A stretch of DNA of 64,000 bases. Source: Bugula neritina (Eukaryota > Animalia > Bryozoa). Numbering within the stretch: the stretch's first letter is position 1; each line of letters opens with the position of its first letter. Shown piece by piece: positions 43,201 through 48,859 of this stretch. A program made the translations under genes and the position numbers. Under the pieces are notes generated by a model. That model saw nothing but the letters and a program-made list of their open reading frames with translations, had not been told where the DNA came from and did not search any database. Where the stretch lies: positions 3,038,001-3,102,000 of the forward strand of contig OZ037769.1 in NCBI GenBank assembly GCA_964035545.1, given 5' to 3'.

Positions 43201-46200
43201 GGGATATTAAATATAGAAAATTGAATATGAAATTACCTCAATCTGTGGAGTACAGCCAATACTTCGACAGAGTATTCAGTAAAACCTCTCTTATGATGAG
43301 AAACCAGAATAAAATTGTGTTGGATACCAATAGCCAAACATAGTTTTATCTAAAAATAAAACAGCTGGCTATGCTTACCTGGTATAAACATAACATGAAC
43401 AATATGAAAAACTGTTCCAATATATTAAATAACAAATATTGATATAAAACTTTGAAACAAAACATTTACTGACGAAATACAATGTGACATTATGATAATC
43501 ATTATGACTATTGCTACTGTACTACAATTAGTATTATTATTTATTATTAGTCTTAATTTCAACTACCATTACAATTACTATAATAATAATCATAAATGTA
43601 ATTATAAGAATTACTATTAGTGTTAGACTAATAATTAACTTAGTTACACTTACAGTGAAGACCAAATGCTATTTTATTTTCATTCTCTTACTCCAAATCT
43701 ATGACTATCAAGTATTAGTATCACGAGTAGTAATACTAATACAGTATTAGTAATAGTTATTATAATAGTAATACTAATAGTATTACTTATTACCATTCAT
43801 ATTACCATTAGTAGTAATAATAATACTAGTATTAGTATTAGCATTATAAGTAAATTTAATTACTAGCAAAATGCAAAAATTAATGTAGTACCTGTGAAAT
43901 GGATAAGTCCACACGGGAACGAATTGATCGCAAAGGGCTTTTGGTATTTTGAAGTAAAAAGTTATAAACATCTGCTAATGCCTTTCCAAATGTTTCTTTG
44001 ACTATGAAAATGGAAAGTTGAGCGTCTATACTTTTTCGGTGTTCGGTGTTCGGTGTTCATGTAAACATTTATTTCTAATTTGTTATTTTATTATTTTACT
44101 ATTTTTTGTCATAATCTTAATAATTAATTGTATCACTTATTGTAATAGTTTTAGTATTTTCGTATATATATATTGTGGTAATAAATCACGGCTTCGGCCT
44201 CTTACGTTTATCAACTAACTCGAGCACGTTCTGTCTTTTCACGATAGCTGAAATAATATCACAAATCAACATAAAACATGGTGCCCCGAGTCTAATTATT
44301 ATTAATATTACACTGAAATAACATGGAGCAATTACTAGCGCCAAAACCATTAGCAGATGGACCGAATTTACCTGAGGAATGGAAGATTTTTAAACGTGAC
44401 TTCGAACTTTTTTTAACTGCCACATCGAAAGATACAGCCGAAGGCAAAGTGAAAACTGCATACCTACTTAGAACTATCGGTCGCCGAGGCAACCAAATAT
44501 ACGACTCTTTCAACTGGACTGACAACAATGACAAAACTGACTATGACAAAGTTGTGACGCAGTTTGATGACTACTGCAAACCAAGAATAAACTTAGTGGC
44601 TAAGACTCACTCACTACTGACTTGTAAGCAAGGAAATAGAACTATTGACGAATTTTTGACTGAACTACATACCATTGCAGGACTATGTGACTTAAAAGAC
44701 ATGTACAACCGACTGATACTACAAGCACTGATACTGGGAATTGAAAGTGACAAGATTAGAAAGAAACTGTTTGACTTGACTGACTTTGACAAAGCAATTG
44801 AACTCTGCAGACGAGAAGAAGCATCGGCTATTGACTACAAGACTATGACTAAGGATAACACATATGGACTCGAACAAGTGAACTTGGTAAAACATAGACC
44901 TCCGACTCATCAATATCACTCTAATGACACTCGTAACACTGATAAACACAGAGGACAACTTTCACACACTCACTCTCAGCCCAACGTCAGAAAATCAGTT
45001 GGTGCTTCTAGGTGTGGAAACTGTGGAGGCAATCACCCACCTCGAGCATGCCCAGCATATGGGAAACAGTGCAATCATTGCAAGAAATTTAACCACTTTG
45101 CTACATACTGCAGGTCACGCATGCATCATTATCGCGACTCAACCGAAACAGCCAATCAAGTCACCTGGAATTACTCTTCAGACAGTGACTCTCAACATGT
45201 AAGTACTATCTCCACTACTGTACGAGATCGTAAATTATTAGCGATGCTCACTGCTAAGCAAGCAGATACTATTTATGACATTGAATTCCAACTTGACACT
45301 GGTGCATCATGCAATACTTTGAATACGATCGACTACGACAAGCTAGGTAAACCGAAACTTACACCGACTGATACTGTACTAACTTTATATGACCAGAGCA
45401 AGTGTGCACCACTAGGGTGGACACGGATACAGATACTAAACAAGCAAGGATGTTACACTACATTAAAATTCCTAGTTGTGGAAACCACCCAACATAGCTT
45501 GCTGTCATGGAAATCATGTTTGCACCTGGATTTATTACAAATGCCCAGCACCAAAAGCGAGAATGTAAACTTTGCCACTACTGACCCAGACCTTCAGACT
45601 TTACTGACTAACTTTGATGACATATTTACCGGACTTGGAAAGTTTGAACAGGAATATAGGATAGAGCTAAGACCTGAAGCTGTACCAGTGCAAGTCCGAC
45701 CGCGGAAGGTGCCCTTGTCGATGAAATCAGATCTCATCAAGACTATTCTTGAACTAGAACAACGTCAAATTATCGCTAAGGTAGAAGCACCTACAGACTG
45801 GATAAGCCATCTACAACCAGTGCGCAAGCCTAATGGAAAGATACGCATCTGCATAGATCCGCAAAATCTCAATCAAGCAATTAAACGAAACCACGCTGTC
45901 ATGCCAACATTGGAAGATGTTTTGCCACAACTCAACGGTGCCAAGTTTTTCTCCTTGTGTGACGCCAAAGAAGGTTTCTATCAAATTCCCCTAGCTGAGG
46001 AATCTACAGACTTGACAACTTTCTGGACTCCCATAGGAAAGTACAAGTACCTAAGGCTACCCTTTGGAATTGCATCAGCGCCGGAGGAGTTTCAGAGAAG
46101 GCTCACGGAAAATCTTGCTGGTCTTGATGGCATCACCATAGTTGCAGATGACATCCTAATTTTTGGAAGCACAAGGAAAGAGCATGATAGAAACCTTGAA

Positions 46201-48859: not shown

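Follow-up and report, generated by a model that had tools for sequence, protein, structure and literature searches.

An intact Ty3/Gypsy retrotransposon lies in intron 1 of the gene POLR3C (RPC3) in a stretch of 64,000 nucleotides of the Bugula neritina genome (contig OZ037769.1, positions 3,038,001 to 3,102,000), which is called the window here and whose positions are used as coordinates below. The element is flanked by 308 bp of perfectly duplicated host DNA, where its sister copies have a target site duplication (TSD) of 5 bp. The end of the element that belongs to the U5 (unique 5′) part of its long terminal repeat (LTR) is joined to the host exactly after the terminal CA. The U3 (unique 3′) end carries a templated filler and microhomology, and the 308-bp repeat abuts both LTR ends. 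The best explanation of this pattern, and probably the correct one, is a one-ended, half-finished integration of Ty3/Gypsy complementary DNA (cDNA) that was completed by host DNA repair. A little less firmly, we lean towards the view that an active Ty3/Gypsy element integrated here by one end, in a natural and heritable event; that slippage on a 7-nt repeat destroyed the CA end; and that an essential gene had its first exon and splice donor duplicated without being harmed. The parts of the locus are, in order of position:

43237-43349, minus strand: POLR3C exon 2, with AG acceptor at 43351-43350 and GT donor at 43236-43235
43730-44037: left 308-bp copy, consisting of 162 bp of intron 1 (43730-43891) and the ghost of exon 1 (43892-44037)
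43892-44037, minus strand: ghost exon 1, without ATG, with GT donor at 43891-43890, reading RKSIDAQ...
44038-44046, plus strand: filler of nine bases, GGTGTTCGG, which separates the left host copy from the initial TG of the 5′ LTR; overlooked in the initial annotation of this DNA
44047-44278, plus strand: 5′ LTR, 232 bp, TG...CA
44279-44290, plus strand: TGGTGCCCCGAG, a site resembling a primer binding site (PBS), starting with TGG and abutting the 5′ LTR; the same bases follow the 5′ LTR of the sister copy L036
44323-48273, plus strand: gag-pol open reading frame (ORF), a single frame of 1,316 amino acids from its ATG
48310-48315, plus strand: polypurine tract (PPT) GGGAGA, abutting the 3′ LTR; its context is identical in 26/26 other copies
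48316-48547, plus strand: 3′ LTR, with its terminal CA directly on host base 48548
48548-48855: right 308-bp copy, consisting of 162 bp of intron, the donor and all of exon 1 that follows the first base of codon 2
48710-48859, minus strand: intact exon 1 of POLR3C/RPC3, 50 codons, with ATG at 48859-48857 and donor GT at 48709-48708

The element between the host copies (44047-48547) is 4,501 bp long and intact, and its two 232-bp LTRs, both running from TG to CA, show 0 differences. The domains in its ORF follow the order reverse transcriptase, RNase H, integrase, with Pfam matches to PF00078 (RVT_1, 500-658), PF17917/PF17919 (RT_RNaseH, 723-850), PF17921 (Integrase_H2C2, 961-1015) and PF00665 (rve, 1044-1120); families specific to Bel-Pao or Copia elements were not among these matches. 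The window element is a member of a Ty3/Gypsy family, complete and very young, and the event by which it was inserted is non-canonical.

A repeat search of 42000-50500 gave two nested pairs of direct repeats, an outer pair of 100% identity starting at 43729 and 48547, and the LTR pair within it. By script comparison the two host copies are identical at 308/308 positions. Beyond them no identity was found on either side, except for one ambiguous A (43729, equal to 48547, which is the final base of the LTR). The right breakpoint of the duplication falls between the first and the second base of POLR3C codon 2, and the left one lies in intron 1, 162 nt past the donor of exon 1. A short TSD is absent, the bases at the left being TTTTC (plus the filler) and those at the right GTAAT. 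The initial annotation had described a young Gypsy insertion flanked by a 308-bp duplication without a short TSD, with breakpoints in intron 1 and inside codon 2, an intact exon 1 and an ATG-less ghost with its own donor. All of this was confirmed.

Complete identity of the two copies is also what an assembly artefact would give, such as a false duplication at a heterozygous insertion, and no alternative haplotig of the locus was found in the assembly: when 43500-44037 was searched against the complete assembly, the two window copies and low-complexity look-alikes of the intron were the only matches. Two exact-pattern scans of metagenome contigs with words from exon 1 and an exact-protein look-up with the 53-amino-acid exon-1 ORF gave no match, results that are uninformative on the allele. 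However, the 64-kb window has no gaps and an N count of 0, reads must contain both novel junctions, and a templated filler of nine bases is nothing that an assembler invents. If instead a tandem duplication was already present and was hit at its junction, a 5-bp TSD would remain, and the insertion must have struck one position in 616. We regard an origin by artefact or by a pre-existing duplication as very unlikely.

The sister copies show what this element family does ordinarily. At least 31 paired-LTR copies are present in the 216-Mb genome (about 34% G+C); 27 were retrieved, and copies were compared pairwise, with no consensus of the element. The counts that follow refer to retrieved copies, leaving aside four other copies with paired LTRs and eight LTRs of variant or solo type. 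The initial annotation had proposed measuring the TSDs of the other copies, and these are uniform: perfect 5-bp TSDs in 26/26 copies having both ends, with no long repeat between their flanks, so that the aberrant structure is seen in 1 of 27 inspected insertions. The family thus has the TSD of 4-6 bp that is typical of Ty3/Gypsy elements, and in the window copy a duplication of 308 bp and the filler of nine bases stand in its place. The two LTRs are identical to each other in 25/26 copies, the mean pairwise divergence of the copies is 0.2%, and of 27 copies compared, the window copy among them, 22 have an open long frame. Low divergence, open frames and uniform TSDs point to a family that is active now or was so very recently, and to a strict integrase.

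This 4.5-kb Gypsy family is in a burst. Ten more LTR starts with one mismatch were seen, mostly unpaired, which suggests an older sub-family or solo LTRs.

The same copies allow another origin of the duplication to be judged, namely two insertions in the same orientation, 308 bp apart and carried by separate chromatids or haplotypes, that were joined inside the element, either by unequal crossing-over or because the assembler changed haplotype there. Unequal recombination between nearby LTR elements, of Ty and of plants, is known to leave a single element with duplicated host DNA on both sides. The L-A-E-A-R topology of the locus is the exact product of such a crossover, and in copies that are about 99.8% identical a switch would be invisible. 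However, fewer than 1e-3 pairs of the same orientation are expected within 308 bp (about 31 copies in 216 Mb), so two hits this close are very unlikely. Recombination of this type starts from two canonical insertions and leaves clean junctions, whereas here a single non-canonical one is seen, with nine bases of filler at U3. In addition, one of the two parents would have carried a broken codon 2 in POLR3C, which is single-copy here and essential in other organisms. A mosaic test of the window copy, of low power, gave no sign of a recombinant element, since the copy groups with L011 and L012 over its whole length. Two insertions are therefore a highly improbable source of the structure.

The junctions themselves differ strongly from each other. 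At U5 the sequence runs from ...AAAACA of the LTR directly into GTAAT of the host, exact after CA and in the same form as in all other copies. The U3 junction is non-canonical and consists of nine templated bases and a 3-nt overlap with the host. The template can be recognized in the LTR start, where nucleotides 1-12 (TGTTCGG TGTTC) make up 1.7 units of a 7-nt repeat, and the filler GGTGTTCGG is the exact outward continuation of this period. When continued past the filler the period matches three further host bases, TTC (44035-44037), and then fails. Read on the minus strand, the U3 junction is ATGAACA CCGAACA CCGAACA CCGAA, followed by AAAGTATAG.

In the 216-Mb genome the expanded LTR start occurs solely in the window copy, the 62 other exact LTR starts being canonical, and within the window copy it is confined to the 5′ LTR. 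Because the 3′ LTR of the same copy lacks it, the filler was not inherited from the source element but belongs to the junction. An inherited LTR variant is ruled out by this absence and by the canonical LTR starts elsewhere in the genome. Likewise ruled out is an origin from the PPT through a mis-cleaved plus-strand primer, as the sequence upstream is ...GTGGGAGA and not GGTGTTCGG.

The expanded start has a single near match, at the 5′ junction of L013 (G000:C1:6583502-6590001), where the TSD TTTGG after TG mimics the 7-nt unit (TGTTTGG followed by TGTTCGG). The resemblance is due to chance, and the junction of L013 is not another aberrant one.

A slip at the other end of the element is seen in L025 (G000:C5:10541443-10547942), in which the 3′ LTR is followed by five extra bases, AAACA, a re-copy of the last five bases of the LTR, and then by a normal 5-bp TSD (ATAAT). 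Terminal slippage thus occurs in this Gypsy family, and integration stays canonical when the CA end is restored.

The same final structure could also have arisen in two steps, by a canonical insertion with a 5-bp TSD at 43729/43730 and a later template switch, of the type of fork stalling and template switching or microhomology-mediated break-induced replication (FoSTeS/MMBIR), that copied 303 bp from the right to the left end of the element. The filler and the microhomology at the left junction fit such a switch. However, two switches would have to land exactly at both ends of the element, a very recent date would be required for each of these events, as neither the LTRs nor the 308-bp copies show any divergence, and nothing alike is seen in the 26 other copies. 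We consider a later template switch quite unlikely.

The two insertion sites were also scored with a matrix of target sites that was derived from the 26 canonical ones. The U5-side site scored -2.9, within the leave-one-out range of -4.5 to 12.7, whereas the U3-side site scored -9.4, under every true site; the matrix is a weak one, with at most 0.42 bits per column. A U5-side site that looks like a true target of the family, next to a U3-side site that does not, lends weak support to a one-ended integration.

The target preference of the family (sites of L011-L037) is itself weak, palindromic and AT-rich, with a TSD consensus near ATAAT. Three independent insertions lie in AGT/ATT-rich tracts of the ATTAG/TATTA type, like the one at 43710-43860 in POLR3C intron 1.

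The one-ended integration that we favour could have proceeded as follows. The U3 terminus would have been lengthened by slippage on the 7-nt repeat, by reverse transcriptase or by a host polymerase. Because a slip of nine nucleotides leaves ...CC-3′ in place of CA-3′, this end would have been a poor substrate for integrase, which would have transferred the U5 end alone, into the intron. The tethered U3 end, with its 3′ terminus free, may then have annealed 308 bp away through GAA/TTC microhomology and have been extended on host DNA, the annealing taking place on the side that yields a duplication rather than a deletion. Finally, the intermediate would have been resolved by repair synthesis, recombination or replication. 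Slippage of the U3 end and its joining at this distance would thus leave the 308-bp duplication on both sides of the element. The anatomy of the junctions and the weak target-site score both suggest that the U5 joint was made by integrase and the U3 joint by host enzymes.

Several points weigh against this reading. The structure, with its two copies linked through the element, is known from assembled sequence of one genome, and an empty site with a single copy is presumed. An exact U5 junction would also result from blunt end-joining of full-length cDNA, and as the PBS abuts the LTR, 3′ processing is perhaps not needed in this family. The single A shared at the U5 junction fits a microhomology of 1 nt, and the target-site matrix is weak, as noted. 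Slippage may have come before or after the failure of integrase, and the sequence is compatible with more than one pathway of resolution.

Part of these points also speak for capture of full-length cDNA independent of integrase. Two nicks on opposite strands, 308 nt apart, would have given a staggered break, into which the cDNA was ligated by end-joining and whose overhangs were filled. Templated insertion and microhomology, as found at U3, are typical of polymerase-theta-type end joining; the 1-nt overlap at U5 agrees with it, and unprocessed cDNA would end in CA already. However, a rare wide stagger and a perfectly kept U5 end are both required, and capture of cDNA at breaks usually leaves truncations or small deletions. 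The resemblance of the U5-side site to an ordinary target of the family counts against capture as well, though weakly. Moreover, the outcome seen here is documented as the commonest class for one-ended integrase events (PMC5041404). Capture of this kind is therefore unlikely.

One-ended integrations are best described for retroviral vectors. According to PMC5041404, they are produced by avian sarcoma-leukosis virus (ASLV) vectors with one defective end and by HIV-1 (human immunodeficiency virus type 1) in the presence of a suboptimal integrase inhibitor or with a weakened integrase. The good end is described there as normal, while the free 3′ end is lengthened by enzymes of the host that copy viral DNA or host DNA nearby. 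Depending on the side of the second joint, host sequence is deleted or, more commonly than anything else, duplicated over hundreds to thousands of base pairs. As far as these accounts from the Hughes laboratory go (PMC5041404, refs 10-12, 34), the likeness to the window copy is close: one normal and one abnormal junction with appended bases, a host duplication of hundreds of base pairs instead of 4-6 bp, and an end proposed to be unusable for integrase. In contrast to those retroviral vectors in cultured cells, the copy reported here is a natural and apparently germ-line Ty3/Gypsy insertion in an invertebrate. Its aberrant end is of full length, where truncation is described as frequent for the vectors; the duplicated segment contains a first coding exon; and a 7-nt slip would stand in the place of the engineered bad end (PMC5041404).

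Long duplications are also on record for natural insertions. For HERV-K(HML-2), Kahyo et al. 2017 report long TSDs of 111 and 250 bp, for which empty sites were sequenced, and a putative one of 450 bp (PMC5488345). The same text raises the caveat of a 'pseudo-TSD' due to rearrangement and the possibility of reversion by recombination between the long repeats. These insertions, which are fixed or polymorphic, share with the window copy that an LTR element inserted naturally is flanked by repeats of hundreds of base pairs, and the same caveats apply to both. In difference to the window copy, they are described as old primate retroviruses, mostly solo LTRs or truncated, and no junction filler is described in the abstract and discussion (PMC5488345). 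The element in the window is intact, with an exact U5 and a slipped U3 end, and its duplication is known from the assembly alone, unlike those HERV-K(HML-2) cases with sequenced empty sites (PMC5488345). Because both junctions are pristine and the element is intact, this asymmetry can be read. As natural long-TSD retroviral insertions are already published (PMC5488345), the novelty of the case is much reduced. Compared with an ordinary integration of Ty3/Gypsy (Metaviridae), the structure of the element is the same, and the 5-bp TSD is replaced by the 308-bp duplication and nine bases.

The assignment of the gene rests on its exons, which were searched one at a time. The 50-amino-acid peptide of exon 1 matches PF08221 (HTH_9, RPC82 HTH; E = 9e-6, profile positions 2-43), and that of exon 2 aligns to residues 51-83 of human RPC3, directly after the 50 amino acids of exon 1 (weakly, E = 0.08). 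Two further exons, 40406-40528 and 39868-40104, match positions 2-32 and 32-77, respectively, of PF22536 (POLR3C C-terminal winged-helix). Exons 2-4, each alone, had no Pfam match, and a PDB sequence search with exon 1 had none either. In the 216-Mb assembly the 79-amino-acid C-terminal exon has one match, and the DNA of exon 1 is found solely at the two window copies. POLR3C is single-copy in this genome, so there is no paralogue to buffer an insertion. In other organisms the gene is essential.

The element is oriented antisense to POLR3C. Intron 1 now has a length of 5,360 nt, and would have 542 nt without the 4,818-bp block. The net effect on the gene is an antisense insertion of 4,818 bp in intron 1, 162 nt past the donor, and the promoter, ATG, exon 1 and donor remain in line with exon 2. 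The ghost exon lacks a Met and is preceded, 6 codons upstream, by an in-frame stop. It is predicted to be inert unless it is used by a cryptic acceptor or by an antisense promoter of the LTR.

These results also bear on how the initial annotation had interpreted the locus. Its proposal of a one-ended or aberrant integration resolved by host repair stands as far as a non-canonical integration repaired by the host is concerned, on the strength of the 26/26 TSDs, the exact U5 junction and the filler and microhomology at U3. Its further idea, that repair turned a hit in the exon into a tolerated intronic one, is not supported: the integrase-like end is already intronic, and the joint on the exon side is the repair joint. 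A concerted event at the integrase-like end would therefore have been an ordinary intronic insertion. That the gene is still collinear is a matter of geometry and survivorship and not a rescue: whenever an insertion is flanked by a direct duplication of which one breakpoint is intronic, collinearity is kept. A route to exon duplication by LTR elements, also suggested there, is valid in principle, but the ghost in the window lacks a start codon and has no evident acceptor.

What is new here is that the element is a Ty3/Gypsy of an invertebrate, that the asymmetry of its junctions is readable and that a coding first exon lies within the duplicate. If the one-ended origin is true, half-integrations as known from retroviral vectors would also befall retrotransposons in the animal germ line and could persist there. 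Exons, first exons among them, would in that case now and then be duplicated by LTR retrotransposons, and insertions of this kind would be precisely revertible by recombination between their long flanking repeats. At the pristine junctions one can directly read the signature of repair and what probably caused the event, a slip of the U3 end. The locus is a concrete case of an LTR element that duplicates an exon with its splice donor, between flanking repeats long enough for precise loss. It is a single case from one assembly of a phenomenon that is published in general, and there is no evidence for use of the ghost exon.

Three tandem arrays lie in or near POLR3C. An (AGT)n microsatellite of 83 units (40144-40392) is located in the span of the gene, presumably in an intron, and gives long poly-Thr/poly-Leu ORFs on the minus strand. 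A 19-bp array of 13 units (42137-42386) is located in an intron, and a perfect 14-bp array of 4.4 units (49453-49514) about 600 bp upstream of the ATG.

Elsewhere in the window, a second retroelement remnant is present at 1624-3368 (plus strand), in which an ORF of 131 amino acids with a partial RVT_1 match follows one of 432 amino acids without Pfam match. Pfam searches of single ORFs further gave an MBD2/3-type C-terminal domain at 17616-18143 (plus strand), a RabGAP-TBC domain in a single exon of 407 amino acids at 27024-28244 (plus strand), and an UNC-93/MFS-like transporter at 52765-53778 (minus strand).

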